Below are positions 2,644 through 58,719 of a stretch of DNA of 64,000 bases, one piece after another. Every line of letters begins with the position of its first letter. The first letter of the stretch is position 1. The notes beneath the pieces are model-generated. The model saw only the letters and a list, made by a program, of their open reading frames with translations, was not told the origin of the DNA and made no database searches. The DNA comes from Selaginella moellendorffii. Its lineage: Eukaryota; Plantae; Lycopodiophyta. The position numbers and the translations under genes are program-made. The DNA lies in NCBI RefSeq assembly GCF_000143415.4, contig NW_003314373.1, positions 324,719-388,718 on the forward strand, written 5' to 3'.

Positions 2644-4491
2644 ATGCAACAAAGATGGAAACTGGCGGCTCTAATAAGAAGTTGTGGCACTGTTCGTGAG
2701 CTTTTGGACATCAAACAACGCCTTCTGTTAGACGCCACTGACACTTTTCTCTCGAATTTAATCGTTTCGACGTTTGGAAGGCTGGGACACATCCAAGATG
2801 CAAAGAGGTTTTTCGATTCGATGCCCCACAAGAACGCCTTTTCGTGGAACATTCTTCTTCAAGAAAATGCCCGAAATTGGCATTTTGATGAAGCACAGTT
2901 TACTTTCAACAAGATGCCCTTCAAGGACGTCGTTTCGTCCACGATTGTATTGAAAATGCTTTGCCAGATCGCAGGCTTGGGGGAAGGTAAGAAGTTCTTT
3001 GAATCACTTCCACAAAGGAATGCCTTTTGCTGGAACGTTATAGTTGCAGCAAGTGCCCAAATCTCGGATTTCGGTAGCGCTGTCAAGCTTTTGCAAAAGA
3101 TGCCTGCGTTAAGTCTTGAGTCTTGCACTGCTGTTATCCAAGCGTTCCTCACGTCAAACGAGAGTTCTTTGTACGAACAAGCCAAGTCACTGTTTGATGA
3201 AATGCCAGAGAGAGATGTGGTGCTCTGGACCGCCATGGTTCAAGGATATGCCCAAGGCGGGCATATCGCAAGAGCTCAAACACTATTTCACAAAATGCCA
3301 TGCCACGACGTGATGGTCTACTCCGCACTCCTAGAGCTGTGCTCCACCCTGGAAGAACTCAAACGCTTGTTTGATGCAATGCCCGAGAAGAACTTCGTCG
3401 CCTGGACGTGTCTTCTGCAAGCGTCTGCTCATCACAAACACGTAAGAGAAGCAAAGCTTGTGTTTGATCTGTTTCCATGCCACGACGTGGTTTCCTGCAC
3501 TGTTCTTCTCGAGGCCAGCATTCTCTCGGACAGAATCCAAGAAGCAAAATCACTCTTTGATGCAATGCCACGGAGAAACAGCGTGTGCTGGAACGCCCTC
3601 TCGTCAAGCTATGCCCAAGCCGGGCATATGGCAGCCGCCATAGAAGTGCTAAGAAAGATGCCAGAGTCGACAGCGGCCTCCTTCGCAGCCATGATCACTG
3701 GATTCGGAGTCGCTGGTTGCATCGGCGAGGCGAAATCCATCTTCGACATCTCCCCGGAAAGAATGCAATCGTCTTGGAACGCTCTGATGCAGTGCTGCAG
3801 GAGCAAGGGAGTCGAAACTCTCGAGACCATCTTCCACAGGATGCCGTGCTGGGACCTCTTCGGCAAGAACATCTTGCTGCTGGGATTTGCACAGAGTGGG
3901 CATATCAAAGCGGCCTCCGAGCTCTTCCACTCCATTCCCGACAAGGACACCGCCTCCTGGAACTCGATGCTCGCAGCTCACGCTTTGCATGGAGATCTCG
4001 AGTCGGCAGCATCCACTTTCGCAACTCTCGCTCGCCCGGACTTGCTGTCGTGGAACTCAATGCTCGCAGCTTATGCTCGGAGTGGAGACTGCCGAGCAGC
4101 GATCCATCTCCTCCAAAGAATGGTTCTGGAGGGTGACACGCCTGATGAAATCTCCTTCCTCAACGTCCTTTCCGGAGTCACTCACAGAGGCCTTGTCGAC
4201 CAAGGCCTCCTGCATTTCCAGTCGATGAGGAGTGACTTTTGCCTGGAACCGAAAGTGGAGCACTACACCTGCGTCCTCAATCTCCTCTCTTGCTGCGCGA
4301 GTCGAGAAGATCTGGAAGTTTTGATCGACACCATGCCTTGCCTTCCTGGAAGTTTTTCCTGGAGATCTCTCCTGTCCGCTTGCCAGAGCTTCCAGACCGG
4401 CGATCAAGCGGCAGCACGGCTCCTGGAGATGGATTCCAACAATGCCGCAACTCTCGTGATGCTGTCCAACATGCTCAAACTTCCGGCTTGA
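2644..4491 (+). CDS. Pentatricopeptide repeat protein, PLS/E class (no DYW)
   Basis: 615-aa ORF with ~31-aa repeats (FD.MP.+DVVSW..), PDEISFLNVLS, P.VEHYTC and WRSLLSAC E-domain motifs. Confidence 0.93.
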   Translation: MQQRWKLAALIRSCGTVRELLDIKQRLLLDATDTFLSNLIVSTFGRLGHIQDAKRFFDSMPHKNAFSWNILLQENARNWHFDEAQFTFNKMPFKDVVSSTIVLKMLCQIAGLGEGKKFFESLPQRNAFCWNVIVAASAQISDFGSAVKLLQKMPALSLESCTAVIQAFLTSNESSLYEQAKSLFDEMPERDVVLWTAMVQGYAQGGHIARAQTLFHKMPCHDVMVYSALLELCSTLEELKRLFDAMPEKNFVAWTCLLQASAHHKHVREAKLVFDLFPCHDVVSCTVLLEASILSDRIQEAKSLFDAMPRRNSVCWNALSSSYAQAGHMAAAIEVLRKMPESTAASFAAMITGFGVAGCIGEAKSIFDISPERMQSSWNALMQCCRSKGVETLETIFHRMPCWDLFGKNILLLGFAQSGHIKAASELFHSIPDKDTASWNSMLAAHALHGDLESAASTFATLARPDLLSWNSMLAAYARSGDCRAAIHLLQRMVLEGDTPDEISFLNVLSGVTHRGLVDQGLLHFQSMRSDFCLEPKVEHYTCVLNLLSCCASREDLEVLIDTMPCLPGSFSWRSLLSACQSFQTGDQAAARLLEMDSNNAATLVMLSNMLKLPA

Positions 4492-6715
4492 TGATCGTAG
4501 ATCTCTTCCTGAGAGCTCGGGCTTTGGAGGACCTCGAGTACCCGAGCTCAGCATGGATGTTTGACAGCAGCACGTATGAAGAGGTGTCGAATGGAGCCAG
4601 CTGCGTAACTTGCTCAGCGGCCACTCCTCCAAGCTCGGTGTCACAGTGGATCTTGCAAGCGCTCAGCAGAGCTCTCCACACGACGTCGTCCACTTCCAAG
4701 CTCTTGACAAGGATAAGCTCCTCGGCCTCCTTGAGCCACCCCGCTCGACCGAGAAGATCGACCACACACGCGTAGTGTTCTGCTGTTGGAGTGAGCCCGT
4801 AGTCCAGTTTCATCGACCAGAGGTGCCTTTGTCCGACTTCCATCCGTCCCGCATGGCTGCAAGCAGCCAGGACGCACGTAAACGTCACCAGGCTCGGCTT
4901 CGTCCCGTCCAAAACCATCTCCGTGTAGAGGTCGAGAGCTTCCAGCGGACGAGCGTTTCTCGCATAAGCAGCAACCATCGTTGTCCAAGTTATCACGTTC
5001 CTCGTCTTCATCTTGTCAAAGATGGCCTTTGCAGCGTCCACGCTTCCACACTTCCCATACATGTTCATCAGCGAGTTCTCGACGAGGAACGCCGAACCGA
5101 GTCCCTTGTCGACAATCCGCTCGTGGAACTTCCTGGCATCCTGGAGCGATTTCACCTCGCCATAGGCCCCGGCAACCATAGCCAGAGTTATCGGAACCGG
5201 AGCCACACCCTGCCTCTCCATCTCCTCGTAAGTTCCAATCACCTCGAGAGGACACCCGTGCTGTGCACAGGCCGAGATCATTGCTGTCCAAGTGATGAAG
5301 TTCTTCTCTGGCATGGTATCGAACATCTCCTTTGCATCCTCGAGACGGCCACAGTTGGAGTACATGGTGACAAGCGCATTGTCCGTAGCCAGTGTGTGAG
5401 AGCCTGTTGTTGTGATATGAGCGTGGATCTCTCTGGCCTCCTTGAGACTGCAACAAGCTGTGACGATCGTCGGAAACAGCATAAAGTCGGGATCCACACC
5501 CTGTCTCTTCATCTCTCGATACAAATCCATAGCTTGCCGGTCGAAGCCTCTCCGAGCGTAGGCTGTGAGCATGGTCGTCCAAGAGCTCATGTTCTTGTGC
5601 TCAGTTCCATCAAAAACCCGCCTCGCAACCTCCAAGTTTTCACAGTTGGCGTACATTGCCACCAGTCCGTTCCTCACCCCGACGTGATTGCCAAAACCAG
5701 TTGCTATGGCGCGAAAGTTAAACCATCGGCACTCCTCCTGGCTCTCACAGGCCCCGAAAACGCTGGTAAAAGTCACCCAGTCCTGGACGATTCCATTCAA
5801 GTCCATCGTCCAGAAAAGCCTCATAGCCTGCCTCGTATACCCGTTCTGGACATAAGCTCCGATCATCGTGTTCCACGAAACGACGTCCCTCTCCAGACTC
5901 TTCTCGAAACAGTCCTCCGCAAGCTCTACACTTCCACACTTGGCGTACATGTAAACCAGGGCGTTCTGGACCTTCATGTCCGAGTCCCATCCACCGTCAA
6001 CTATCCTCCTGTGGATCTTCTTCCCAGTCTCCAAATCGCAGCAAGCACCGAGAACGCAGGCAAACGTTGTCGTCGTTGGTTCAACGTCCATTGCTTCGTA
6101 TAGCTCAACAGCCTCTCCGAGATGCCCACTCTGGGTATAAGCCGAGATGATAGAGTTCCAGGAAACCACGTCCTTCTGGGCCATACTATCAAACACTTTC
6201 CTTGCATCCTCGAGACTCTGGCACTTGGAGTACATGTTCACCAGCGCGTTCTGGACGACCCGGCTCATCTGTGAATCAGTTGCCAGGATCTTCTGGTGAA
6301 TGGCTTTTCCTTCTGGCAAAGCTCCCGGACCACAGCAAGCTCCGAGAATCCGAGAGTAGGTATGTGAGTCGGGATCTTCCATCGAGTGAAACAAACTCAA
6401 GGCCTTGCTGTGATAACCGTGCTGGATGAACGCACTGATCATGAAGTTGAATGTGATGGGCCGTTTGCACGGCATCCTCTCGAAGATCTGACGAGCGTCT
6501 TCCAGGCTGCCGCAGCTGCTATACATCTTGATAAGCTGGTCACCCAAAAGAGCGTTGCTGCCAAACCCAGCCTCTACAAGATGAGCGTGGACGAGCTTTC
6601 CATGGGCCAAACTCTTGGAGCTGACACACTGCTGCAGTAGAGAGACGTAGCCGCTGACTCGGTTGATGCGTTGCTTTAAGGCGTCTTCGATTTCTCTCAA
6701 CGCTGGCTTGATCAT
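4475..6715 (-). CDS. Pentatricopeptide repeat protein, PLS/E class
   Basis: 746-aa ORF with NALVNMYSKC, DVVSWN, EHYACVVDLLGRAG, WRALLSAC, YVLLSNI. Confidence 0.95.
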   Translation of the reverse strand: MIKPALREIEDALKQRINRVSGYVSLLQQCVSSKSLAHGKLVHAHLVEAGFGSNALLGDQLIKMYSSCGSLEDARQIFERMPCKRPITFNFMISAFIQHGYHSKALSLFHSMEDPDSHTYSRILGACCGPGALPEGKAIHQKILATDSQMSRVVQNALVNMYSKCQSLEDARKVFDSMAQKDVVSWNSIISAYTQSGHLGEAVELYEAMDVEPTTTTFACVLGACCDLETGKKIHRRIVDGGWDSDMKVQNALVYMYAKCGSVELAEDCFEKSLERDVVSWNTMIGAYVQNGYTRQAMRLFWTMDLNGIVQDWVTFTSVFGACESQEECRWFNFRAIATGFGNHVGVRNGLVAMYANCENLEVARRVFDGTEHKNMSSWTTMLTAYARRGFDRQAMDLYREMKRQGVDPDFMLFPTIVTACCSLKEAREIHAHITTTGSHTLATDNALVTMYSNCGRLEDAKEMFDTMPEKNFITWTAMISACAQHGCPLEVIGTYEEMERQGVAPVPITLAMVAGAYGEVKSLQDARKFHERIVDKGLGSAFLVENSLMNMYGKCGSVDAAKAIFDKMKTRNVITWTTMVAAYARNARPLEALDLYTEMVLDGTKPSLVTFTCVLAACSHAGRMEVGQRHLWSMKLDYGLTPTAEHYACVVDLLGRAGWLKEAEELILVKSLEVDDVVWRALLSACKIHCDTELGGVAAEQVTQLAPFDTSSYVLLSNIHAELGYSRSSKARALRKRSTIIKPEV

Positions 6716-18864: not shown

Positions 18865-20215
18865 TTAAGGGGAGAAGAAAAGCTTAATACCTTGCTTACC
18901 AGCAATCTCACGAGCATGGCTTTGCCTTTTCACTGCGTGGTTTTTGAGAATTTCTTTCTTGATGTCGGCCGAGAGCTTGTAGCTCACAAGGCGGATAATG
19001 GGAGCCCAGAAAGCCTCGAGCAGTGTCCTGGCGAAGCTCGCGGGAGCAAGCATCCCGCGAGTGAGCACCACCAGCGGGAAAAACGACTTCGGTGCCACGA
19101 GAAACGAGCCTTTCTTGACAGCATCGAGCGTGACCTCCGCGAGCTTATCGGGTGACTGCATCGTCTTGGGATCATATCGATTGAGTATCTTGAGCATTGT
19201 TTCAAACTCGCCATCCTTGTCCACTGCAAAAAGTGTAGACTGTCACGGCTAGAAATCTTTCAAGTGTAAGTACCTTGATCTATAAGAGCAGTGTCGACAA
19301 AGCCAGGACAGACGAGATTGACATTGATGTTATACGGCAAAAGCTCGAGATGGAGACACTCTGCTAATCCTCGTAGAGCATGCTTGGTTGCACTGTACAC
19401 TGAGCTCCCGTACAAAAGGAACTGGAGAAAAGATCAACACAAGATATAAAGAGAGATTCCTATAGAGTGAAGTATACCAGTCCTGCTCCGGAGCTGACGA
19501 TCACAATCGAGTGCTTCTTTTCGCTTGCGAGCGGCTTCATGAGTGGAAGCGCGGTGTGGACTGTATGAATCACTCCCATCAAGTTCGTCTGGACTTGACC
19601 TGCATGAACTTCCACCGGGACTTCGTCAAAGTATCCAGCCTTAGTGTACCCCGCGTTGCAAACCAGGACGTCGATTGGTTTCCACGAGTGAGCCTCGCTC
19701 ACGGCGGAGGATATCGCGTTAAAATCGCCAACGTCGGCCACCTGATAAAAGTAGGATAACTCCAAGTAAGAACTTGGAAAAATTCCAATCAAGTAAGAAC
19801 GAATAAAGAAAGCAATCCAAAGGACGAACAGAAGAAAACAAGACGAAAGAAACAAGAAACAAAGAGCAAAACAGCAAAACAAAAAGCTATCAGAACGATG
19901 GACGATCAAGGCAGAAAGAGATGTATGTATACATACCAAAACTTTGATGCTATGGCTGTCGCAGTGCGCTTCACTCACAAGAGATTGAGCCGCCTTGTCG
20001 AGCTTGAGCTGGTTTCTGGCCGAGATGGTAACAAATGCCCCTTGGAGGAGGGCCTGCTTGGCAATGGCGAGCCCAATGCCGCTGGAAGCTCCTGTGATAA
20101 AGACGTGCTTGCCCGCCAGCGATGGGATAGCCAGTTTCTTCCTCCTGCCAAATGTAAGAAATGCAAACGCCACCGCCGCTGCCGCTGCCGCTCCCGCCGC
20201 CACTAGCCCCGCCAT
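18865..20215 (-). CDS. Short-chain dehydrogenase, 3-ketodihydrosphingosine reductase (TSC10/KDSR)-like, multi-exon
   Basis: N-terminal TM, HVFITGASSGIG, DVLVCNAG, YSATK catalytic motif (19380-19400), CPGFVDT. Confidence 0.85.
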
Positions 20216-20510
20216 TGCTCCCGCGCTAGGGCTCACATCAATTCGATTTGGGGTTTATCTTTACTTTACTGCTACACTCTTTTGATTTTGATAAAATTGA
20301 TAATTCTTGATCTTTTCGTTAAATAAAAGAATACTAATTGCTATGGAAGTTGGCCCCTATTGTGTCTTGTTCTAGAACCCAGAATTATTGGGTTTGTCTT
20401 TTTTTTACTATAGCATTATTTTTAAAAGTTGTAATAACTAAGCATATCCTATTTTAATGCTATTTAAAAAGCCTTTATAAAGCAGATATAAACCATTTCA
20501 TACTTAAAGA

Positions 20511-20963
20511 ATGACAGAGTTTGTTGTAGTTGTTTTCCTTTATTCATTTTTACTATATTTTCTTTTAGTTGGTGGGTATTTGCCAAGTGAAGCAACTCAA
20601 GATTGTATATCAATTGGTACACAAGATCCACCTTCTCCCCAAGCATATTGTCATGTAACAAATCTGTGTAAAGTTAGGTACTTTAATAATTTTTGGGAAA
20701 ATGGAGAATATACTGCCTCGGGAGGAGGAATTTATGTCACAATTACTGTTAATAGAATGTATAGTAGGGCATCAATTCAACAAGATATAGAACAAGCTTT
20801 TAATTTTATATGGATTAGATGTATATCAGTGCTACGTCAAATGGGTGGTTTTGTTTATTTGAATGATGGAAGTTTATCAGTTAATGTTCAGATTGCACGA
20901 AGAAGAGAGTTATTAAAAGATCTTGATAGAATTAAAATAACAAAAGAATGTTCATCTTTATAA
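20511..20963 (+). CDS. Small secreted protein, putative LDL/Y3-lectin or DUF26-like fold (copy 1)
   Basis: Intact 150-aa ORF in AT-rich DNA with hydrophobic signal peptide; frame conserved in copy 2 and homologous to the N-terminal domain at 58263-58670. Confidence 0.75.
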   Translation: MTEFVVVVFLYSFLLYFLLVGGYLPSEATQDCISIGTQDPPSPQAYCHVTNLCKVRYFNNFWENGEYTASGGGIYVTITVNRMYSRASIQQDIEQAFNFIWIRCISVLRQMGGFVYLNDGSLSVNVQIARRRELLKDLDRIKITKECSSL

Positions 20964-22742
20964 ATACCATTAATATTATAAAAAAATTATTATTTATAAA
21001 TTTAAAATAAAAATTAATAAAAGAATATAATCCAGAGTGTAGTATTTAAAACATATAATATAACAGATATTAAAACTATGATTATGATACATGACTTATG
21101 ACATAAAATGAAACAAACACAATATTAAGTGGTAGTATAGTTTGAAAAACAAAATATTTCCAAAATATTTTTTGAAATAAGATAGTTAGAGATATTATAA
21201 TTAAATTCATTAGTTTCAAAATAATTTACTATAGTTTCCTAGCAGCAATATCTGGTCTTCTTGGGGTTAGTTTCCAAGAAAAATAGTTAGAGAGGAGGAA
21301 TTTAAAAAACTACTCTTAAATCTTATAAGTTTTGATATGATAGTTTGATGATGATTAAACTTATACATATAAGGTAATAATTTGTTGCACATTACATGCT
21401 TTTAAGAATGTCATTGAAGTTATAATTAAAACTTGAAAACACTTTTTTCACATCATCCTCAATTTCCCATATAACCTCGTCCATAGAATAACCATTCCAC
21501 CAAACCAACAACTCCCAAATTGTCTTGCAATTTGTTTCACCAACCTTTAAAAAAAAAATTTGGTTAGATAAACTTTATTAGTATTAATCTTTGGGACCTA
21601 AAATTCACAACATCACTAGAGTACAAACATGTTTTAAACTTGCTTACATAAAATGTTGCATATGCAACAAAATTGTAGATAATACAATATAATATTGTAG
21701 AGACAATTTAGCACTACCCTTTTAGATATTGTTATGCATTTAATAGTTTAAGGAAAATTTTGTCACCAACTTTATATTTCTCATAATTATGATGTGCATT
21801 AGCCAATTTCTTGTTTCATTCTTGAACTTGTCTTATGTTCAACTTTGCCACTTTCATATCCTCAAAAAAATCACAAGTATGAGGCACTTAAACTAAAGAT
21901 AAAATTAAACTCATGAGAGACTTGGGCTTATAGCTATACATGACCATGAATAGAAACACGTAAATATCCAATTGATGAGTGTTATTATGAGCAATCTAAA
22001 GTCAAGGCAAATGATTCTCCCATACTCTTAATATCGAGTCAAGTTTTCCATAAAAGATTTTAGCATATATTCCAATAGCTAGTTTATAATTTTTATTTGT
22101 CCATTTGATTATGGATGTTTGCCACTAATTATACTCAGCTTATCTCTAACTTCTCAAAAATCATTTGCCAAAACTTATCCTCTCCCTTTAACCTATTTGG
22201 AAAGGGGGCAATTATTTAATGTGAGATATTTTAATGGCTATTTAATCCTTATATATCTTCTATACTTCCAAGAATTCACAACAACAATATATCTAAACTT
22301 CATCCCATGATCACATGTGTTACATTTAGTCAAAATGTTATGATGATATATTAAGGGCAGCTTTTAGGGGTCTGAATGTGGTTGTTATACTAAACCATAC
22401 GTTGGTCTTATTCATAAAATTCTTATATAAATTTATAAAAAAATTATTATATGTCAAGAATTAATACTGATAAAATTAAAATTAAAAAAACAAAAAAAAA
22501 GTACAAATACATGTTTAGTTTTCAATATATATCTTTATATATCTTTGTCTCATTCAATATTGGATGTTTTCTATAATTTATTGCTTCTTAACTATGAATT
22601 TATCAAAACTAAATACAAGTTTTAACTGTTTCAATTGTCCATACCATTGTTTTTGTAGAACTTTAAATGCTTTTATTTATAGCATCACTACAACATTTTT
22701 TAATTAATTTAAAATCTCATAATGCTTATATTACCTTCTTCT

Positions 22743-23147
22743 CTACTGAAATACTACATCATCATAACCATCATGTGAATAATCACCATCAAATGCCCAA
22801 TTTTCCCATCCATACCAACCTTTAGTTTTAAAATGACCATTACCAATAAATGATACACCATCAAATGGTACATTATTTATTATTTTAGAGCACTTTTCTG
22901 CTGATAGTGTATCATAATCAAAGTAAGCAAATTCATTACCTTTTCTCCATAAAATAACATTTGCTTTATAAACATTACAATTTGCAAGAGCAAATTTCAT
23001 ATCTGGAGCCCAATTAAAATTATCTTTTCCTTCAATGATTGTTACTGTATAAAGAAGTTATTAATTAAGGATTAAGTTCAAAATATTATACTTACACTGA
23101 TATATATTAAATAAAAATAAAAGATAGAACCAGGTATTAAAACCCAT
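22743..23147 (-). CDS. Small secreted protein, 117 aa, with G.F...G..GW.NWAF.G motif (copy 1); exons 23147-23096 and 23044-22743
   Basis: Exon 1 encodes the signal peptide MGFNTWFYLLFLFNIYQ; a 51-nt GT-AG phase-1 intron joins it in frame to LTIIEGKDNFNWAPDMKFAL...; structure conserved in three copies. Confidence 0.8.
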
Positions 23148-23999
23148 GAATAAAAAATATAGTAATAATATATAACTAGCTTAGTAATTTCAAGATATTT
23201 AATGTAATTTTAGGTATAAATTTATCTTTAAATAATATAAAGCTGACAATAATTACTAATACTTCCAAAAAGAATTATTTTGTTCAATAATTATAAATTT
23301 CGTCTATACTTGACATGTCAAATTTGTATTTTTTGTCACTCTAAAACAATAGTAGGCATACTACATGCCTAAAATTGTGTTAACATTTGTAATATGTTAG
23401 CAAAATACAAATGAATGATGTTTTTTGGTTTGCTTAAGCAACGCTATAGAGGAAGTGGGGTGGTACTGGATATACCTAGAATATTAAACACTTTCTAAAC
23501 ACTTTCTAGTATATTCTAGTATTCTACCATCTTGATATTAGATTAATCTTGTGTTTATAAATTATAAACATGTTTATAATTATAAAATTCTGATCAATTG
23601 GATTAATAAATAGGAATAACACTACTATTAAGCAAACCAAGCATTACTGCATGCAACACATAAAAAATTATTATAATTTATTACAATTCTGAGCTTATGT
23701 ATTTTAAGATGTCTCAATAATTATTATATTATATAATTATAGTTTCGAATGGATTATCTGTGAGAAATAATATGTTACTCTTTTTTAATTTAAATTCCGC
23801 TCTAATATATGTTTACTAATAACTCTCACTCCCAAAATTAAAGTAATACATGATTTCTATACTACAATTCTCATTAGATGGCAAATAAACTTCATAATAA
23901 TCAATGATGCTCACTTTGATGTTTTGTGTAGAGTCATATGGATATACCATAGTATATCCATATCTTCCCAAAGCAAAAACTCCTATCACTTAAGACTAA

Positions 24000-26292
24000 T
24001 CTAGTACTATAAGCCGAACTTTGTGGGCTGCCGGATCTGGCCAATCGGTGCCATCAGATGCAGGGTAAACTGGTAAATATCGGTTTCTTACTGCACATCC
24101 TTTTGAAATATTTTTGTGAGGTTTTGGGCCGGCCAGTGGGCATGCGGCACGGCCCCGGCTGGGGGAGGAGGTGTGAGCGACACCCGTCTGCTTGCCTGGT
24201 AAAGCTCTCTTTTTTTCACCACGGCTCCTCCCAGCCACGGGGTTTCCAGGGGAAGCGGGAGAGGGGGCACTGCTGCCCAGCAGCGACAAGGACAGGGGAT
24301 CACTCAGCGATACTGCATTCCCTTTTCCAATGGAAGGAGCCCAAATCGTCAGAGCAGGATTTTGGCGACGAGCAGCTGCAAAGGCGTGGCCGGAGGCATC
24401 GACAGGGAAGCAGTGGCTAGGGATTTTGCTGGAATGGATGGCGAGCAAGGGCGTGGCAGAGCCTGGGGGTGTGGATGTGAGGCACGGGAATTCCTATTTT
24501 TGATCCAGCAGAGGATTCGCTTTCATCACGTACAAAAGTGTTGACGACCCGAGGAAAGCCATAGATGATCCCAACAAGACAACAGTGGTAAGCTTACCCA
24601 AACATACCATGGTTTTTGCTGACGAGTCTATTCTTCCAGGGAATGCACATAATTGTAAAGTGAGCGGCAGATGGTTGGCTCCAGAGCGCGTGACGAGCAA
24701 GTGCTACATCATTGGAGTGGCTTTCTCCGGTGGTGATCGTGAAGACTGAGGAGAGCTTTCTCCACGGCGCACTCAGCAGCGATGGACTGGTGGATATGGC
24801 TGCCAAACTCGCCGAGGGAGTGAGCAGGATGGACAGACGCTTCATGGTGATGGAGTTTCATTGGCAATCCTCACAACTTCATTACGTCTTGGGGTCCATG
24901 AAGCTGGAAAAGAAGAAGAGTGGAAATTCGCTACTCCATGCATACGATGTTAACAAGAGCTTGGAAGACTTCCAATGCTTGGAGATGATCACAAGAGAGT
25001 TTGGAAGTTTTCAGAAGATCACAAGAGCTTCGAAGTTTTCTTTTTGCTACTGGATGATTTGATCAACCAAGAACTCTCTATTTTTACAGTTCATGCAGAA
25101 AAGTTTTTGATCTTTGGGAAAGATTCCACTCGCTGAAAACGCACTGAAAAAGTCCTCATTATAATGTAACGTGGGAGGAATGATGAGCTGGATCCAACAG
25201 CCAGTGAGGCTCCACGTTCCCGGCATTCATACCGGGGCTAGGGTTTTCTCCTCCTGGGCCTCCACGAAAAGGTTGCATCGAAAAGGTTAGTTTTTATGCC
25301 TGTCCATACCCTTTCTATCTGCCCTAATAATTGATCTCCATTTCCAAAAGAAGCTGTTGAAAATAATGTCGCACCTTCAACATGTATTGAATGCTATTCG
25401 ACACAGACATACACATTCCACATACAATGATAACGTTGAAAACACTAACCAGCACCAGCATACATATAGCTTTTACAACAGTAATATTCAAGAGGCTACA
25501 CAGTATTGACATCAAACAAATCTTAATAATCAAACTGAACAGCAGTCAATTTCCAATTCCTATTTGCCCCCTTCACCTCAGATTCACAGCACACTTGCTA
25601 GGAATTACTTATATATTGATACATCTGTTTTGACAATGAATATAGGTCCCTTATCATATATTTGTAAGTATTGTCATGCCTCACACTTTGCTGATGCGAA
25701 CAAGTCTATTTGTTGCCAGAGTGGACAAGTCTACCTGCCTCCAATACTTCTATTACCACCTTTTCTGTATTCTATGTATAACTCACACAAACACTCTAAT
25801 TTCAAGAGTAATATAAGACAATATAATAGTGCACTTGCTTTCACATCTATGGGAGCTAGCATTGATATTTTTACGGGTCATGGTCCATACTGCTATAGAA
25901 TTCATGGACAAATCTATCACAAAATTATGCCACAACATCCTTCAATACATCAAAATCCAAGTTACAGTCAATTGTACATGCTAGACTCCAATGAGGCTAC
26001 TGATATCAGAAAACAAAACCCTTTTAACATTATTTGTGATTATAATTTACTACTTCAACTAGATAAGATACTCCAACATATTAATCCATATGCACAAGCT
26101 TTTAGAATGATGTATGAATTGGAATGAGAAAATATTTCAAGAACTATTACTTCTGGTAGCAATTTACGTGGAGTATATATGCTCATTAAAAATGAAGGCA
26201 CAGACCATCGTTGATATAATACTCCACAAACTAATGATGTTGCATTAGTTTTCCAAAGTGAAGGTGGTGTGCCACCTTTTGACCGTGAAATA
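24000..26292 (+). mobile_element. Truncated, shorter Helitron copy (5' terminus, cargo, start of Rep ORF)
   Basis: A|TCTAGTACTATAAG start as at 30556; colinear with 34685-37400; Rep N-terminal motifs CKYC, CCQSG, NIRQYNSALAFTS. Confidence 0.8.
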
Positions 26293-26299
26293 TGGAGAA

Positions 26300-26719
26300 T
26301 ATAGAAGAATGAATAGTAAAGTAAGAACAAATAAAGAAAGCAATCCAACGGATGAACAGAAGAAAACAAGATGAAAGAAATAAGAAACAAACAGCAAAAT
26401 AGCAAAACAAAAAGCTATTAGAACGATGGACTATCAAGATAGAAAGAGATATGTATACATGCCAAAACTTTGATGCTATGGCTGTCGCAGTGCGCTTCAC
26501 TCACAAGAGATTGAGCCGCCTTGTCGAGCTTGAGCTGATTCCTGGCTGAGATGGTAACAAATGCCCCTTGGAGGGCCCAATGCTGCTGGAAGCTCCTGTG
26601 ATAAAGATGTGCTTACCCGCCAGCGATGGGATAGCCAGTTTCTTCCTCCTGCCAAATGTAAGAAATGCAAATGCCACCGCCGCTACCGCTGCCGCTCCTG
26701 CTGCCACTAGCCCCGCCAT
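26300..26719 (-). pseudogene. 5' fragment of the TSC10-like gene
   Basis: MAGLVAAG...HIFITGASSSIG followed by a frameshifting deletion; ends inside intron 1. Confidence 0.88.
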
Positions 26720-27018
26720 TGCTACACCAATTCACTCTTTTCGATTTGGGGTCTATCTTTACTTTACTGCTACACTCTTTTGATTTTGATAAAATTGATA
26801 ATTCTTGATCTTTTCGTTAAATAAAAGAATACTGATTGCTATGGAAGTTGGCCCCAAGCATGCTCTATTGTGTCTTGTTCTAGAACCCAGAATTATTGGG
26901 TTTGTCTTTTTTTTACTATAGCATTATTTTTAAAAGTTGTAATAACTAAGCATATCCTATTTTAATGCTATTTCAAAAGCCTTTATAAAGCAGATATAAA
27001 CCATTTCATACTTAGAGA

Positions 27019-27471
27019 ATGACAGAGTTTGTTGTAGTTGTTTTCCTTTGTTCATTTTTACTATATTTTTTTTTAGTTGGTGGGTATTTGCTAAGTGAAG
27101 CAACTCAAGATTGTATATCAATTGGTACACAAGATCCACCTTCTCCCCAAGCATATTGTCATGTAACAAATCTGTGTAAAGCTAGGTACTTTAATAATTT
27201 TTGGGAAAATGGAGAATATACTGCCTCAGGAGGAGGAATACATGTCACAATTACTGTTAATTCTATGTATAGTAGGGCATCAATTCAACAAGATATAGAA
27301 CAAGCTTTTAATTTCATATGGACTAGATGTATAGCAGTGCTACATCAGATGGGTGGTTTTGTTTATTTGAATGATGGAAGTTTATCAGTTAATGTTCAGA
27401 TTGAACGAAGAAGAGAGTTATTAAAAGATTTTGATAAAATTAAAATAACAAAAGAATGTTCATCTTTATAA
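27019..27471 (+). CDS. Small secreted protein, putative LDL/Y3-lectin or DUF26-like fold (copy 2)
   Basis: Intact 150-aa ORF with 12 aa differences from copy 1. Confidence 0.75.
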   Translation: MTEFVVVVFLCSFLLYFFLVGGYLLSEATQDCISIGTQDPPSPQAYCHVTNLCKARYFNNFWENGEYTASGGGIHVTITVNSMYSRASIQQDIEQAFNFIWTRCIAVLHQMGGFVYLNDGSLSVNVQIERRRELLKDFDKIKITKECSSL

Positions 27472-29493
27472 ATACCATTAATACTATGAGAATATATCAT
27501 TAGCTAGAAATTTAAAATAAAAATTAATAAAATCATATAATCCAGAGTGTAGTGTTTAAAATAAATAATAAAACATATATTAAAACTATGATAATGAAAC
27601 ATGACTTATGACATAAAATGAAAAAAATAAATATTAAGTGGTAGTATAGTTTTAAAAAAACATATTTCCAAAATATTTTTTAATATAAGATAGTTAGAGA
27701 TATTATAATTAAATTCATTAGTTTCATTGTGAGAGAAATAATTTACTATACTTTCCTAGCAGCAATATCTGGTCTTCTTTGGGTTAGTTTCCAACAAAAA
27801 AAGTTAGAGAGGAGGAATTTAAAAAACTACCCCTAAATCTCATAAGTTTTGATACGATAGTTTGATGATGATTAAACTTGTACATATAAGATAATAATTT
27901 GTTGCACATTACATGCTTTTGAGAATGTCATTGAAGTCATACCTAAAACTTGAAAACGCTCTTTTTACATCATCCTCAATTTCCCATATAACTTCGTCCA
28001 TAGAATAACCATTCCACCAAACTAACAACTCCCAAATTATCTTGCAATTTGTTTCACCAACCTTTAAACAAGAATATTAGTTAGATCAACTTTATTAACA
28101 TCAATCTTTGGGACCTAAAATTCACATCACTAGAGTATAAATATGTTTCAAACTTCTTTACATAAAATGTTGCATATGCAATAAAATTGAAGATAATACA
28201 ATACAATATTGTGGACCTTTTAGATATTGTTATGCATTTAATAGTTTAAGGAAAATTTTGTCAAACCAACTTTATATTTCTGATAATGATGATGTGCATT
28301 AGCCAATTTCTTGTTTCGTTCTTGAACTTGTCTTATGTTCAACTTTGCCACTTTCATATCCTCAAAAAAATCACCAGTATAAGGCACTCAAACTAAAGCT
28401 AAATTTAAACTCATGAGAGACTTAGGCTTATAGCTATATATGACCATGAATAGAAACATGTAAATATCCAATTGATGAGTGTTATTATGAGCAATCTAGA
28501 GTAAAGGCAAGTGATTCTCCCATACTCTTAATATCAAGTCAAGTTTTTTATAAAAGTCTTTAGCATATATTCCAATAGCTAGTGTATAATTTTTATTTGT
28601 TTATTTGATTATGGATGTTTGCCACTAGTTATACTCAATTTATCTCTAACTTTTCAAAAATCATTTGCCAAAACTTATCCTCTCCCTTTAACCTATCTGG
28701 AAAAGGGGTAATTATTTAATGTGAGAGTTTTTAATGGCTACTTAATCCCTATATATCTTCTAAACTTCCAAAAATCCACAATGACAATATATCTAAATTT
28801 CATCCCATGATCACATGTGCTACATTTAGTCAAAATGTTTGTGATGATATATTAATATCTCACAAATATGGTCCACATGTCAAAGTTCAATAGAAGTGAG
28901 ATATATATGATAATTAATGTTTTTTTCAAATTTTAAAAATTGTAAAATTTTAGTATTTTTTCCAATACAAATCAATCACTGCACTATTGTGGTAAATTCC
29001 AAATGTCTACATTTTAAAAAAACTGGAAAAAACATCAATTGCCTGATGAGTCTAAGAAAGAGAAAAGGATTGATTGATTCAGCCAGACTTAAGAAAAAAC
29101 AAATTGAGGGCAGCTTTTAGGGGTTTGAATGTGGTTGTTATACTAAACAATATGTTGGTAATATTCATAAAATTCTTATATAAATTTATAAACAAAATCA
29201 TTATATGTCAAGAATTAATACTGATAAAATTACAAAAAAAAACCAAAAAAGTACAAATACATGTTTAGTTTTTAATATATATCTTTATATATCTTTGTCT
29301 TATTCAATATTGGATGTTTTCTATAATTTATTGCTTCTTAACTATGAATTTATCAAAATTAAATACAAGTTTTAACTGTTTCAATTGTCCATACCATTGT
29401 TTTTTTAGAACTTTAAATGCTTTTATTTATAACATCACTACAACATTTTTAATTAATATAAAATCTCATATAATACTTATATTATCTTCTTCT

Positions 29494-29898
29494 CTATTGA
29501 AATATTACATCATCATAAACATCATGTGAATAATGACCATCAAATGCCCAATTTTGCCATCCATACCAACCTGTAGTTTTAAAATGACCATTACCAATAA
29601 AAGATACACCATCAAATGGTACATTATTTATTATTTTAGAGCACTTTTCTGCTGATAGTGTATCATAATCAAAGTAAGCAAATTCATTACCTTTTCTCCA
29701 TAAAATAACATTTGCTTGATAAACATTACAATTTGCAAGAGCAAATTTCATATCTGGAGCCCAATTAAAATTATCTTTTCCTTCAATGATTGTTACTGTA
29801 TAAAGAAGTTATTAATTAAGGATTAAGTTCAAAATGTTATACTTACACTGATATATATTAAATAAAACTAAAAGATAGAACCAGGTATTAAAACCCAT
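29494..29898 (-). CDS. Small secreted protein with GW.NWAF motif (copy 2), 2 exons
   Basis: Same ATG, intron and frame as 22743-23147. Confidence 0.8.
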
Positions 29899-30994
29899 GA
29901 ATAAAAAATATAGTAATAATATATAGCTAGCTTAGTAATTTCAAGATATTTAATGTAATTTTAAGTATAAATTTATCTTTAAATAATATAAAGCTGACAA
30001 TAATTACTAATACTTCCAAAAAGAATTATTTTGTTCAATAATTATAAATTTCCTCTATACTTGACACGTCAAATTTATATTTTTTGTCACTCTAAAACAA
30101 TAGTAGGCATACTACATACCTAAAATTGTGTTAACATTTGTAATATGTTAGCAAAATGCAAATGAATGATGTTTTTTGGTTTGCTTAAGCAATGCTAAAG
30201 TGGGGTGGTAGTGGATATACCTAGAATATTCCTGGATATTTTAGGATATTCTACCACTTAAGTGTTATTCATTTAGATTAATCTTGTATTTATAATTTAA
30301 ATAATTGTATTTAGAAATAATATGTTACTCTTTTTTAATTTAAATTCTGCTCTGATATATGTTTACTAATAACTCTCACTCCCAAAATTAAAGTAATACA
30401 TGATTTCTATACTACAATTCTCATTAGATGGCAAATAAACTTAATAATAATCAATGATGCTCACTTTGAGGTTTTGTGTAGAGTCATATGGATATACCAT
30501 AGTCTATCCATATCCTCCCAAAGCAAAAACTATCATACTTATCACTTAAGACTAATCTAGTACTATAAGGAGCAAACGCCAAACTTTGTGGGCTGCCGGA
30601 TCCAGCCAATCGGGGCCGTCCAATGGGGGGGTAACTGTTAAGGGGTTATTTCTTTAACCACGTGTTAGCAAATAATCACGCTGATGTTTGCTCCTGGCCA
30701 ATGGGAGGCAGCCAAGCCATGTGTGGCGGGAGAGGAAGGCCCGACGACGCATGTCACATGCAATATGTTGACTGTTGTTGTCTGTCAAGCGAATTAGTTT
30801 TGTTTTGTATGTTTTTCTAGGGTTTATGAGACAGCGAAAGAGCCCCTGCCGCTGCTGCCAATTCACGATCCAAATCGGAGGCGCTGTGTCAACGCTGGTG
30901 TCTTTGCTCCTGAGAACCATCGCAAGTTGCTATTTGTCATTCTTCTTTCATAACTTTGGTATTCTCATACACGATGTGTCTCTGCTTTTGGCTC

Positions 30995-39400: not shown

Positions 39401-40692
39401 GAACAATTAATTATATTCAATGAAATTATTAACATTATCAAGTGCCCAACCTATACCAACCATTTTATTTTTATTGATAGCCCTGGCGGTACTAGTAAAA
39501 TATATTTATTAAATACAATGGTAAAATATTTTGAGTTTTACAATAAAAAAAGTGGTTTTTATGGCATGGACAAGCATTGCAAGCACACTACTACACAATG
39601 GACAAACGTCCCATACAACCTTTATGTTACCAGTTCCAATTAATAATACATCCATTTCTAATTTAACACCTAATAACAGTGCCGGTAGATCTATGAAAGC
39701 AATACAAGTGTTTATTTGGGATGAAATTAGTATAGTTCATACACTTGCCTTTTCAGTTGTCGACTGCTGCCTACGAGACTTGAAACAGAACAATTCTCCA
39801 TTTGGTGGCATTATTATTGTTATAAGTGGTGACTTCTGTCAAACATTATCAATTGTCCCACACAGTTATTAAACACAAATTGTTTCCACATCTGTAAGAA
39901 TGAATAGTCTATAGAATTTATTTAGAAAGTTCCAATTGCAAATAAATATGCGGCTTGGCCCCAAGTTCCCAGACTGGGCAGAATAGCTATTGAAAGTCGG
40001 TGATGGAAATAATTACACACAAAACCCTATTTTACCACTTGATTCTATCCTTTTTCCTTCAGAACTAATTAAAAGTACCTCTATTACTGATTTTGTATTC
40101 CCATGTATCGAAGACATTTCAAATGTTCAAATTGCAGCAAATAAAGCCATTTTAACACCTCTCAATGATGATATATTTCCAATTAACAACAACATTATCT
40201 CTCAATTACTAAGTCCACCTCAAATTTATACTAGCATTGACTCTGTTGATGTTGAACACCCGAGAAATATGCCTCCAACAATTGGATTATGCAATGGAAC
40301 TCAACTAATGGTCAAAAGAACTTCACCTAAAGTTTTGGACTGTGAAATAATTATAAGTGAATTTAAAGGTACTAGAACTTTTATCCCACGCATTAACTTA
40401 ACACCTTCTAATTCAGATGTTCCATTCCATATGTTTCGAAAACAATTTCCTCTTCATCTTGGATACTGCTTAACAATTTCAAAATGCAAAGGTTAAACAT
40501 TTGATCGTATAGGCATCTACTTACCTCAGTCAGTCTTTACTCATGGGCAGCTCTATATTGCACTCTCAAGATGCATATCACCACAACAACTTGCAATTCG
40601 AGTTGACACAACTCATATACAAGGCCACTTAATTCCATTCAATTCATCAACATTCATCATCAATACTGTATACAAAAAAACTTTATATTAAC
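36477..40692 (+). pseudogene. Helitron Rep/PIF1-helicase ORF with many stops and frameshifts
   Basis: DPMVYPLLFPYG, QQYIVDAYVK, PDIFITFTCNPKWPE, EFQKRGLPHCH, HINVEIC, DSPGGTSK (Walker A), WDEIS, GDFCQTL, GLCNGT, QFPL, VFTHGQLY. Confidence 0.95.
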
Positions 40693-43687: not shown

Positions 43688-46600
43688 TTAAGAAGGTGTT
43701 ACTTCGAAGTACACAGCGTATTTTTCATCACTGTAGGAAGAGAGTGGAAACATCAGGTAAGTGTCGTTGTCACCATAAGCCTCAAAACTCATGGGATGAT
43801 ACGAGGCTCTTCCCGCGGTCACACCGAAACTGGCTGCCATCTTGTTGAATCTTTCGCACTCAAGAGTGATATCCCTTCCTTGAGCAACCAAGAAGCAACC
43901 TTGGATGCCGCTGGCCTCGAAAGAAATTTCTCCCGGATGACCAGAGAGCGCTGAACGTAGCTTAAACACCGAAGAACTCGAGGGGAAACCCGAGCTCTTG
44001 CCGTTAGTAAGCCTGACACCATCTTCAATCCCAAAATGAGTGACAAACCTCCCCGGCCGATTCAAGAGCTCGAGAGATACCTCCCGATCGAGCAGCAAGC
44101 TTGTAACATCCTTGACTTGAAACTTCTCTATCGTCTTCAGAGATGGTAGTAACTTAAGTCTGAAAGTTGCGAGAGGAGCTTCTTCGGAGCCGTGTTGAGG
44201 CTTGCTGATCATGGACAACGCTCCATCGCTGCTTGCTGCTAGATACTGGAGCTTTCCTTGTTGGAGTTGCGTGAAGCTAAACAGATTACTGTCACGCACC
44301 GGTTTTATCCATCTCGAAGGAGTCGATACGTTGACGGATCCAAGTTTATAATTGCCATCGCTCATCCCAGCCAGGAGGTAAGGACCGTAGTATATCGCGT
44401 AGAGCGATGAGTACTTTGAGCGCTCATCTAGATCATTTTCAAAAGCGAGTGTAAAACTTATATCGAGAGCTTCCATTCGTTACCTTGGATCTTTTCGAGC
44501 CTTAGCATGGCCGAGAAGGTAAAGGATAATTTATCTCCGGTCTTCCATTCTCGTGACACATCGAAGAACGTTCCTGTGAGAATCGAGCTTTAGAGAATCC
44601 AATCCATGCTATATGCCAGGAAACGAAAGAACCCGTACCTGGTGTTAAGTTTTGAAGCTCAAGTCCGTTGAGAAGGCACCTGGAGGATTGAGCCCAGTAA
44701 GGCACCCGAACGGACAACTTTGCTTCGCTAGTTTTTCCAAGCACAAGCTTCTGCAAGTTTCGCTTCAACAAAACTGGCCAGAGGAGAAAATTTTAGCCTC
44801 ACCTGTGTGAAATTGAATGTGACCGTCATCACAGGATCAGTCGAGGTCATATGATAAACCCGTTGATCTACGCTGAGACCAGCGGCAGTCCACAAAACTT
44901 TAGACGACAAATATTGGATCACGTATAGCTGTGGAGTGTCTTGTACTTCATCTGTGAAGTAAATGGAGTCTCCAAGCTTGGAAAAAGACTCGATTGCTAC
45001 AAACATGTGCAAGTTTTGGACATAAGAAGGAGAAGAGAAGAACATACCGGTTCCATAGCAGCACCAGAAAGACGAAAATGGTGTTCCCCAGCCATGATAG
45101 GACGTCGCTTTGGAGCTTCCAGGGGCAAGAGGAAGCATGTAGATCATAACTCCAGGCTCTTTTCCTCGTTGAATTGTGAGAACCCCGTTGATTAACGCTC
45201 TCTCGTAGAAATCAGCGTAATGCATTTGCTTTGTCCAGCGGAAGAGATTTCGTGCCACCTAAAGCAGTCAAACAGCATGTAACGATAAAACTAAAAAAGA
45301 GAAAAGACTTCCTAATAGAAACCTTGAGCATGTTGTAAGTTGTACAAGATTCCTCGTTTTCGGTTCCCAGAGTATCTCCAAGTCTACTCGGATCGGACCT
45401 GAATTATAAACAGGCCCAGATCTCAGATTGAGCTTACTTGATAAATCCTTACCAGAATTCGCCGGCAGACGTCCCCCCTGTAGCATATGTATGGGAGGAG
45501 CTCACGATTTTCATGAAATATTCGCTTAAATCCTGAAAAAAAACTCGCTAACTCTCATGCTTACAACTGGATTAAAAGCTGGACCTTATAAAGCTTATCA
45601 CCCACAACTTCGTACCGCAATTGAGCACCAATCACAATGGGTATGTGAGTGTTGGCATGAAAGCCCGATATGCTATCAGCCTGGAAAAATTACCAGAAAA
45701 AAAAGAAGGCAAGCAAAAATGTAAGAAAGAAAACAGAAGAAAACAGAAGAATTACCCGAACAGCCAACAATCCTAGGAAACATGGTTTATCAAACAAGTG
45801 TGCCAACTTTAAGTGTTTCGCATCTCCCTGAGAATGGTTTTTTCGTCAGGATCAACCAAGCCAAGCTGTGAAGAGCTTACCGTAATTTGATAGACACGAT
45901 ACAAGACATCGTTCATCCCGCCAGTCTCCTCGTTTAGTGATTGCCAGTGTCTCTCGATGCTATACTTCTCAATGACCCTCTCAACGCGGCTCCCAAAGTA
46001 ATCAGTCATGCCTAACAGCATCTCGAATGCAAGACTGTTCGCGGCGTACGTATACTGATCCAAAAGTCCTGCCATAATCTTTCAAGGGAACAAAAAAAAC
46101 ACAGGACTACGTTGGAAGTTCAAGGAAAAAAAAAACAAGAAAGCTCTATACCTTGTGAATCGTGTAGTATGGTGCCCAAACAGACTCCAGAGCTTCGAAA
46201 CGATCAAACAAGCTGGTTGGAAAAGCAGACAAGTATCCAGTTCCAATCTTTGCCTGGCACTCGGCCAAAGCTGCTACAACAGCATTCATGTTTTCGTAGA
46301 TGGTGAGGTTGTGAGTGGAGGCCCAAGTCATTGCACTCGCACTGAGATAATGCCCTGCAAATGGAAACTTAAGATCACCGAGGAAAGAATCGTTTCACAC
46401 ATACCCACGAAATGGCCCCGGAGCTCTGAGGTCGGAAGCTCCCATCCTCCATAGGCCGATCCCGAGGCGTTCAACCCAGCAGTGGTTCTAAAACTATACA
46501 CCAAGTTGTCCACATCGAGCATCAGCAAGTAGTCGAGATTGGTTTGCTGCGCAATTGCCTGCCACGAATCCGGCAAAAGCCTCACGTCGTGCAGTGAAAC

Positions 46601-46846
46601 AGCCTCAAGAAAGGAATTGTTTCGCTGCTGCTGGAGGACTCTCCTCCTGGAGAATTCTAGCGAACCTGTGGCGGTGGTGGTGTTCCAGCTGCTGGCGGTG
46701 GACGTGAGCTCCAGGCCGGAATCGAATGCCGCGAGGAGCTGAGACCGCAAGGTGTGTGAAACCCCAGTGTTGGTGCACATCTTTCCATGGCCAAGCGGGC
46801 AGAGGAGTGGCAGCAGAGTGAGTACCAGGAGCGAGAAAGGGATCAT
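43688..46846 (-). CDS. Secreted GH127 (beta-L-arabinofuranosidase-like) protein with C-terminal AbfB-like region, multi-exon
   Basis: YGGWE...ELRGHFVGHYLSA, WAPYYTIHK, ETGGMND, HANTHIP, ESCTTYNMLK, FWCCYGT; signal peptide; short introns. Confidence 0.92.
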
Positions 46847-47107
46847 CGTTCGCCTTCTAGACTTCCTGGAAAAGAAACAAGAAGATCATGGAAAGATCAA
46901 GCTTAAGAACAAGCAAGGATGTAAATAAAAGATCCTAAAAAGAGAAAAATAAGGAGAGAAACCCCTTGTCTGGTTTCGATGATGCTGCATTATCCTCTAG
47001 CGCAATGATCCTCCATTCCTTGGAATGCAAGGAAAGCTACCATCACAAACCATCTCCACTCTCGATGCAATCATAAACTTTGCTTCTTTAGATAGCTTCT
47101 CAAGAAA

Positions 47108-47770
47108 TTGCATGATCATTCGAGTCCAAGACCTCCTTTTTGCATGGATGATTGCCTCAGGCTTATTGATTCTTGCAATACACTTTCTTTTGCTCGGCAG
47201 ATTCGAGCTCGTCTTGACTGTGCCGGCACTGTGTTTATCTCCAACAAGCTCATTGAGATGTTTGGCAGGTGTGGTGGAGTGCAAGATGCCGAGAGTGTCC
47301 TCTATGCGATGGACAAGAGGGATCCCTTCTCGTGGGATGCAATGCTCCTGGCGTATACGAATAACTCTTGGCTGACCCAGGCAAGGGTTTTCTTTTTTGA
47401 TCTAATGCCGGAACAGAGCCTCATTGCCTGGACTGCAATACTCGTGGCACATACCCACACAGGTCACCACTGGTTTTTGTCGATGCAAGCTGACTTTAAC
47501 GTCAAACCCAACCAGCGGCACTTTTGTTGTATGGTTGATCTTTTGGGACGTGCTAGCTATTTGGTTGATGCAGAGGATTTAATTGCTAATATGCCCTTTG
47601 AGCCGGATATTTTAGAGTGGACGTGTTTTCTTGGAGCTTGCAAGAGTCACAGCCATGTTGCATTTGGAACTAATGCAGTAAAGAATGTGCTCGACCTTTG
47701 TCCTAGGGGTGAAGCTCCTCAAGCGTATCCTTTGCTTGCAAATTTAATTGGTCAAAATCTGGCTTTTTAG
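47108..47770 (+). pseudogene. PPR gene with a large in-frame internal deletion
   Basis: Matches 56011-57780 but lacks 1128 bp between two ACCCA microhomologies. Confidence 0.85.
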
Positions 47771-47820
47771 TAACTCTTTTGCTTTAAAGAGATGTTATAT
47801 GATAATTTATTTTAGACATG

Positions 47821-48650
47821 TCAATGAGAACATAACTTATCACTACCTAATGCCCACCAAACATTGTTAGGACGTTTTTCAGAGTATATAACTACATTAC
47901 AATCATTTTGAATAGTAAAAAATAAAGTGCAACAAAGGAATTTACAAAATTGATTAATTTCCCATACTGTTTTCTCTATTAGATTTAAAATAAGATTACC
48001 ATTGTTTTGAAATTTCAACATACAATTATAACCATATTGTGTAGTACTTGATTCCCAAATTTTATTTCTTTCAAAGTACAAAACAAGGTTGCAATGTGAT
48101 TCAAGAATAAAAACAACTTTACCATTTGGAGAAATTAAAAAGTGATCTGTATAAAGTGTTGAAGGATTACTTATAGAATTGACTTCTAAATAACAATTAG
48201 AATTATAATAATATTTTCTTTCTAATAGAGATATATTTTCTTTTTTAGATATATGTAAATCTGTAATTTGAACCATAATCTCAAGACTTCCATCATATAA
48301 TATAACATAGCCAACTTTGTTTTCCTTTTTATAAAACAGTTACTGAAAATAAATTTTAGAGCTTGCTCAAAATCATGTTGTATTTCTTCAAAGCTTACAA
48401 TTTTTAAGCTTAATGTAAATGTAAAATTTATGTTATTTCAGGAAAATTTATATATTTTATTTTCTATATTATTTCTTAACAGTATATAGCTAATGTTTAA
48501 GAAGTTAGAGTAGTCTTGAGGTGAAGGCATATTATGATGAGTAGAATTAATAACACATTCTTGAATAGATCTATTAGATACATATGCTTGACATTCATAA
48601 AAGCTTAGAATAATAATAAATAATATCAATATTGCCATTTTTATCTCCAT
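47821..48650 (-). pseudogene. Secreted LDL-like domain + bulb-type (GNA) lectin fusion, disrupted copy
   Basis: Signal peptide; TGA stop at 48438 and a 1-bp deletion near 48320; lectin motifs ESHCNLVLY, QNNGNLILN, QNDCNVVIY. Confidence 0.8.
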
Positions 48651-57782: not shown

Positions 57783-57845
57783 TCTGGCTTTTTAGTAACT
57801 CTTTTGCTTTAAAGAGATGTTATATGATAATTTATTTTAGACATG

Positions 57846-58670: not shown

Positions 58671-58719
58671 TTTTATCTCTATGATATAAAAATAATTGTA
58701 TTATATATAAAATTATATT

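Follow-up and report, generated by a model that had tools for sequence, protein, structure and literature searches.

Among YvgO and the plant proteins described here, antifungal activity has been reported only for YvgO of Bacillus. According to reviews and reference lists citing Manns et al. (PMC8703302, PMC9755354, PMC6363656), YvgO of Bacillus thuringiensis SF361 is a secreted antifungal protein that acts against Byssochlamys fulva and Candida albicans, and its mechanism is not known. The yvgO gene of B. subtilis is listed in the SigB general-stress regulon (PMC7824861). In YvgO, which is small and secreted, a C-terminal domain of approximately 100 residues comes after a signal peptide. The same layout was found in the predicted products of a gene family of Selaginella moellendorffii and ferns, the secretion of the plant proteins being judged by inspection. 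In this study a stretch of 64,000 nucleotides of DNA of S. moellendorffii, a lycophyte and not a seed plant (contig NW_003314373.1), hereafter called the window, was analysed at its full length. What is new is a diverged plant branch within a microbial family already known; three copies of it, missing from the annotation, lie in the window. The literature searched contained no mention of "DUF7888" or of the identifiers of the plant proteins, and among the YvgO papers in the matches listed there was no title on ferns or lycophytes.

The list of open reading frames shows at the locus of the first copy, copy A, only a frame of 85 residues that starts at an internal ATG at position 23000. The original prediction had instead joined an upstream exon to it across a short intron, giving a protein of 117 residues. 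Its coordinates proved exact (Table 1), and the same build recurs in two further copies in the window, B and C, and in the S. moellendorffii paralogue XP_024534696. When spliced, copy A translates into 117 residues. Exon 1 encodes a hydrophobic, signal-peptide-like N-terminus with the core WFYLLFLF, and exon 2 contains the motif F-K-T-x-G-W-Y-G-W-x-N-W-A-F-x-G. The 85-residue frame is too short, because the alignment with the homologues extends beyond the internal ATG on its upstream side and takes in a conserved tryptophan at exon-2 residue 11. The length of the open frame of copy A is weak as evidence: when the 25% GC patch was shuffled 500 times, an open stretch of at least 100 codons turned up in 33 cases. 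Exon 2 alone served as the query for searches and folding, whereas the joined coding sequence was used for translation, composition and dN/dS; signal peptides of the window copies and their relatives were assessed by inspection. Copy A was confirmed at the sequence level as a genuine, unannotated two-exon gene with a predicted product of 117 residues.

Table 1. Positions of the gene copies and of a neighbouring gene in the window
Feature	Position	Strand	Description
Copy A, exon 1	23096..23147	(-)	52 nt (17 codons plus one base), phase 1, ATG at 23147; copies B and C conserve this exon
Copy A, intron	23045..23095	(-)	51 nt, GTAAGT...CAG; splice sites identical in copies A, B and C
Copy A, exon 2	22743..23044	(-)	302 nt, 99 full codons and TAG stop; YvgO/DUF7888-like domain
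Copy B	29494-29898	(-)	Exon 1 29898-29847, intron 29846-29796, exon 2 29795-29494; found by tblastn with both exons against the window
Copy C	54753-55158	(-)	Exon 1 55158-55107, intron 55106-55055, exon 2 55054-54753; found by tblastn with both exons against the window
PPR protein	4478-6715		746 aa

The exon-2 translations of copies B and C are 94% and 84% identical to that of copy A. The ATG, the GT/AG splice sites, the reading frame and the stop codon are intact in all three copies. The intron of copy C has 52 nt, owing to a 1-nt insertion relative to copy A that is tolerated in the intron; no such indel occurs in the coding sequence. Copy B lies within a duplicated block of approximately 4.3 kb, in which positions 19791-24076 match 26319-30641 with 91-93% identity, and copy C shares approximately 1.2 kb with the other copies at 86-87% identity. 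All three are absent from the protein collections searched and were therefore called by no annotation pipeline. An exact look-up of the 85-residue frames of copies A and B in public assemblies gave no match.

An HMMER search with a profile of the three exon-2 translations against 1.84 billion protein representatives returned seven matches, two of which are real. P0001 is XP_024534696 of S. moellendorffii (111 aa, E 5e-14), for which there is a near-identical second entry, XP_024544383, and P0003 is KAH7404834 of the fern Ceratopteris richardii (E 2e-5). The match P0002, a 4133-residue cadherin-repeat protein from Chlorobiaceae (E 4e-12), was rejected as the sum of 27 repeats of at most 4.4 bits each, and P0004-P0007 were discarded as repetitive proteins. 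A word-index protein search with copy A alone gave no candidate. When the widened alignment was used instead, a word search brought in a JGI contig as well as proteins from the ferns Adiantum nelumboides and A. capillus-veneris. One more fern-like contig came from a metagenome scan with the plant-type motif. Fern-type members were seen on short contigs of 34-40% GC in environmental or run assemblies (JGI 3300047535, SRR35512180 and ERZ1034411), which presumably represent fern DNA in those samples. In the fern-like contigs the frame of the domain is closed by an upstream stop and lacks an in-frame start from which a signal peptide could be read. By inspection, all full-length plant members carry an N-terminal signal peptide, which is clear in P0001, P0010, P0012 and P0013.

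The S. moellendorffii proteins XP_024534696 and XP_024544383 (LOC112347667 and LOC112351200) belong to the same family as the window copies, to which they are 37-38% identical. XP_024534696 shares with the copies a two-exon structure with a phase-1 intron after the signal peptide (61-nt first exon, 43-nt intron) and a cysteine pair at exon-2 residues 22 and 51. It differs from them in being annotated in RefSeq and in its location amid housekeeping genes, DNA polymerase alpha and others. The fern proteins, KAH7404831-34 of C. richardii, L7F22_006840 of A. nelumboides and GOP47_0001366 of A. capillus-veneris, have the same domain with 33-36% identity, an identical GWYGWENWAF core and a signal peptide. 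They are longer (153-168 aa), with a spacer of 40-60 residues between signal peptide and domain, and lack the Selaginella cysteine pair. The Ceratopteris gene takes 1.9 kb to encode only 168 residues and hence has at least one intron; all plant genes examined have introns. Seed plants, from which the family had not been known to the original prediction, yielded no member in the one HMMER search with the Selaginella profile over the 1.84 billion representatives or in the word searches. The plant family is narrow rather than widespread, its plant branch being known so far only from Selaginella and ferns.

The composition of the three copies differs sharply from that of the genes around them. They have 27-28% GC and a GC content at third codon positions (GC3) of 0.14, compared with a GC3 of 0.45-0.66 in neighbouring genes. 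For CpG, the three genes have an observed-to-expected ratio (o/e) of 0.00-0.13 and the AT-rich patches one of 0.11-0.17, whereas the neighbouring PPR genes reach 0.8-0.9; TpG/CpA is in excess in the copies. For XP_024534696, on the other hand, GC3 and CpG o/e are both 0.59. In 2-kb bins across the whole window, GC content and CpG o/e are correlated with r=0.89. GC-rich genes with normal CpG (GC 0.44-0.55, CpG o/e 0.7-1.0) alternate with AT-rich, CpG-depleted patches (GC 0.25-0.33, CpG o/e 0.03-0.26), a mosaic that suggests sharply bounded methylated and unmethylated domains. CpG depletion with an excess of TpG/CpA is what cytosine methylation and deamination usually leave behind over the long term, and such methylation often means silencing. 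From this pattern we infer that the copies reside in repeat-like, methylated DNA, which would also agree with their not having been annotated. A GC content of 28% does not mark the gene as foreign, because the loss of CpG runs through all AT-rich patches of the window. A giant-virus insert as the source of these patches was considered and is unsupported, as the BFVD viral models gave no match and CpG depletion explains the composition. When the changes between copies A and B were polarised with copy C as outgroup, 8 were from S to W and 19 from W to S. Since these changes are not AT-biased, the composition is not in active decay.

Whether the copies in such DNA are maintained genes or young pseudogenes is the question on which the evidence divides, and constraint on the window copies is mixed. 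A dN/dS of 0.8-1.0 among the three copies cannot be told apart from neutrality and rules out strong purifying selection, so amino-acid constraint since the duplications has been weak. This ratio is what would be expected if the AT-rich copies were silenced and functionless, had so far acquired no stop codon, and had been carried along as segments of methylated repeat-rich DNA were duplicated; the GC-normal paralogue XP_024534696 would then be the family member that works in this genome. The CpG depletion with TpG/CpA excess points in the same direction, as do the missing annotation and absence from protein collections, the duplication of whole blocks including non-coding DNA at 86-93% identity, and the Helitron/Pif1-like fragments nearby. 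The survival of the frames is by itself not compelling either, as the probability of finding no stop in approximately 33 neutral substitutions is 0.14. On the other hand, the distribution of indels argues against silenced duplicates: the 711 aligned non-coding columns contain 14 events, whereas the 354 coding columns, in which 7.0 would be expected, contain none (P about 0.0009). Divergence from copy C is likewise lower in coding sequence than in the flanks, at 7.9% versus 12.6% for copy A (p=0.022) and 7.3% versus 11.5% for copy B (p=0.04). Among the columns that are conserved in the other plant relatives, 1 of 24 varies between copies A, B and C, compared with 16 of 75 other columns (p=0.064). 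The start codon, both splice sites and the stop have been kept in every copy, and the gene shows a coding-type periodicity, with GC at the first, second and third codon positions of 0.39, 0.31 and 0.14 against 0.24-0.26 in the flanks, so that GC3 is well below GC1. On balance, we consider it unlikely that the copies are silenced duplicates. That copy A is a real and maintained gene and is homologous to YvgO/DUF7888 appears likely. For the gene model and the homology taken alone, leaving maintenance aside, our confidence is high.

The homology was approached from a resemblance noted in the original prediction, which had pointed to a family of small proteins from fungi and Gram-positive bacteria with a similar C-terminal motif. 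The motif of this family, GDGG-x2-NWA-x2-G, was back-translated and applied in a scan of bacterial and archaeal genomes. The scan returned at least 120 loci, with Bacillus, Streptomyces, Kitasatospora, other actinomycetes and cyanobacteria prominent among the matches listed. Where the open reading frames among these matches were long enough to test, 119 of 124 belong to one family that includes YvgO of B. subtilis. One locus (L101:4378-4860), flanked by genes for a cation/proton antiporter and an aldo-keto reductase, encodes a protein that shares 96-98% identity with "stress response protein YvgO [Bacillus subtilis]", relatives of which carry PF25411.3. The microbial family named in the original prediction is real and corresponds to Pfam PF25411 (DUF7888). 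Two observations concern its bacterial members. In several actinomycete loci (L056:3766-5435, L019, L053, L063 and L067) the YvgO-like genes are arranged in tandem, three or four diverged paralogues at a time. The motif also occurs, in Streptomyces and Kitasatospora, inside open frames of 400-1300 codons, measured from stop to stop, and the YvgO-like domain may thus also be part of much larger proteins in these genera.

The likeness of the window protein to this family was assessed by profile-profile comparison, which revealed homology. When the plant alignment was compared by hhalign with 27 diverse bacterial domains, a match over 92 columns, i.e. the whole domain, was obtained with 97.9% probability and an E value of 5.8e-13. 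The bacterial set carries an ascertainment bias in that the motif used to gather it overlaps the plant motif, a bias partly offset by a set not chosen by motif and by a motif-free test. Because of this overlap, the comparison was repeated with 120 YvgO homologues that had not been chosen by motif, and it gave 96.5% and E 9e-10. With everything from the motif onward removed, the N-terminal 65 columns aligned in the same register with a score of 25.4 (E 2.4e-4), while the best of 30 column-shuffled controls scored 19.2. A hidden Markov model of the bacterial set gave 15.6-33 bits for all ten plant sequences, with Ceratopteris at 33 bits and the window copies at 15.6-19. In the ESM Atlas, copy A had as its best match by features a 126-residue, mostly ascomycete DUF7888 cluster (0.87, 162 features in common), which is only a lead by the tool's own standard; when the fern protein was compared by structure, this cluster came fifth (TM 0.54/0.44, residues 60-152). 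Neither Pfam nor NCBIfam yielded a match for the three copies or for the plant relatives, and PF25411, with a gathering score of 27 bits, was absent at E values up to 10. The lack of a Pfam match is attributable to the older local model of PF25411 (version.1), with which even the bacterial domain pieces score only 12-18 bits, though PF25411.3 is given in the precomputed table. Taken together, the profile comparisons show that the domain of the window protein belongs, as a divergent member from plants, to the YvgO/DUF7888 family, which is known as a family of small proteins secreted by bacteria and ascomycetes.

The order of elements is common to YvgO and the plant proteins: a helix, an N-V-hydrophobic strand, several further strands, the segment F-x-N/T-x-G-x-x-G-x-x-N-W-A-F-x-G-x-F/Y-x-R/H and a C-terminal end with V-x-F. 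The GDGG motif is present in 113 of the 120 YvgO homologues. Every plant member has W-Y in place of its inner D-G but keeps both outer glycines of this hallmark motif as well as N-W-A-F-x-G. The plant proteins differ from YvgO in an identity of only approximately 24%, in G-W-Y-G for G-D-G-G, in scoring below the Pfam threshold and in having spliceosomal introns, and the Selaginella members additionally in their cysteine pair. A different family was suggested by the name "S-protein homolog" that UniRef gives to P0013 (GOP47_0001366 of A. capillus-veneris). S-protein homologues (SPH, related to self-incompatibility protein S1) are small, secreted, mainly beta-stranded plant proteins, and the plant YvgO-like proteins are likewise small, secreted and mainly beta-stranded. 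If they belonged to that family, their likeness to YvgO would be convergent. We regard this as very unlikely, since no match to PF05938 or any other Pfam family was found at E values up to 10 in the window copies, P0001, P0003, P0010 or P0012-P0014, the precomputed Pfam field of P0013 is empty, and the hhalign match to YvgO homologues is significant across the whole domain. The name given to P0013 looks unsupported.

The structure of the exon-2 product was predicted with AlphaFold2. With an alignment of ten sequences a model with a pLDDT of 80.6 and a pTM of 0.71 was obtained, whereas the three copies alone gave an unusable model with a pLDDT of 45. The former predicts a domain of approximately 90 residues, in which a helix at exon-2 residues 11-22 is followed by about eight beta-strands. 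Foldseek against the Protein Data Bank (PDB) found no credible match (best E 0.3), and VIA-align against 48,161 chains gave a best Z of 4.5, to monooxygenase effector proteins, which is below the noise level of 7-8 of the tool. The BFVD viral models gave no match, and a sequence-profile search of the PDB revealed no related solved structure, which does not imply a new fold. The conserved aromatic cluster of W76, Y77, W79, W82 and F84 in exon 2 may be a candidate binding surface, in line with the ligand-binding face proposed in the original prediction.

A maximum-likelihood tree was calculated from the ten plant and 27 bacterial domains; it is unrooted and contains no fungal sequences. The plant sequences form one clade (100/99) on a long branch of 2.3 changes per site. 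Within it a Selaginella group, consisting of the window copies and XP_024534696 (92/80), is sister to a fern group (91/83). This topology would fit a single origin before the split of lycophytes and ferns, followed by vertical descent. Since the plant clade comprises a lycophyte/fern split and its genes have introns, any transfer is ancient and not recent. A recent transfer from an AT-rich microbe, either a fungus or a Gram-positive bacterium, might be read from the low GC and GC3 of the gene next to those of its neighbours and from the microbial-type motif, but is extremely improbable: the closest relatives are plant proteins in a monophyletic clade, the spliceosomal phase-1 intron is placed as in the GC-normal paralogue, identity to bacterial members is only approximately 24%, the AT-richness is common to the surrounding non-coding DNA and coupled to CpG depletion, and a scan of bacterial genomes, viral contigs and metagenomes with the plant-type motif found no microbial or viral relative. 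Of the horizontal transfer put forward in the original prediction, the recent form is thereby discarded, and an ancient one stays plausible and unproven. Ancient acquisition from a bacterium or a fungus would be the simplest reading of the patchy distribution, and we judge the chances for and against it to be about even.

The reported activity of Bacillus YvgO leads to the question of what the plant proteins might do. Exon 1 supplies the predicted signal peptide, and the product would be exported to the apoplast. There, by analogy with YvgO of B. thuringiensis, the secreted plant protein could target fungi or microbes of other kinds. Its sequence evolves fast and under weak constraint, as defence proteins typically do. 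Function may, on the other hand, not carry over from YvgO across the long branch of the tree, and an antifungal role of the plant proteins, argued by this analogy, is put forward tentatively, as a possibility on the doubtful side. As to its history, the family would have entered plants by one ancient bacterial or fungal transfer before the divergence of lycophytes and ferns, and would since have been lost, or have diverged beyond recognition, in seed plants. The extreme AT-richness of the window copies would stem from their residence in CpG-depleted, presumably long-methylated repeat-rich DNA. Joined into one account, more than 400 million years ago a YvgO-type antifungal gene would have passed from a soil bacterium or fungus to the vascular-plant ancestor, gained a signal-peptide exon and an intron, and been kept only in lycophytes and ferns as an apoplastic defence, with a recent expansion in Selaginella to at least three extra copies, which pipelines would miss because of the methylated, 25% GC DNA around them. 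With all its parts taken at once, this account is somewhat unlikely.

The homology links proteins of lycophytes and ferns that are named "uncharacterized" or "hypothetical" to a microbial family with a reported antifungal member, and thereby gives them a first testable function. It also adds a candidate to the ancient transfers from microbes to plants that have been kept only in seed-free vascular plants. For the S. moellendorffii assembly, the three copies indicate that intact, apparently maintained genes can escape annotation in CpG-depleted patches of 25% GC. If the antifungal reading were true, a small, stable, secreted plant antifungal protein would be of practical interest.

The remaining sequence of the window contains further duplications and small reading frames. 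A block of approximately 2.2 kb, positions 46514-48686 and 55429-58718, is duplicated with 95-96% identity and carries a PPR gene (56011-57645) and an adjacent lectin-like reading frame. Copy C abuts this PPR-bearing block at 55425/55429. A short-chain dehydrogenase gene (Pfam adh_short) is located at 19460-20236 (-), and its 5' part is repeated at 26319-26719, where a truncated reading frame of 72 residues with substitutions in the glycine-rich motif is found; this is probably a pseudogene fragment from segmental duplication. The reading frame 39990-40496 (+) has a weak match to the Pif1 2B domain (E 6e-4), and the frame 25564-26127 (+), for which no Pfam match was found, has a sequence that we take to resemble the N-terminal regions of Helitrons. 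Both look like remnants of Helitron/Pif1 helicases. Other genes of the window include large intron-less PPR reading frames, one of them with an E motif, and genes for a DUF568 protein and a P450. The 746-residue PPR protein of 4478-6715 occurs without a single difference on scaffold GL377677.1 of S. moellendorffii (GCA_000143415.2). A second pair of AT-rich reading frames, 20511-20963 (+) and 27019-27471 (+), shares the duplicated block with the YvgO-like gene, at a distance of approximately 1.8 kb from it. Each encodes 150 residues with a hydrophobic N-terminus, at a GC of 0.31 and a GC3 of 0.14. No Pfam family was found for this pair; both duplicates are intact, and they may represent another unannotated gene for a small secreted protein.
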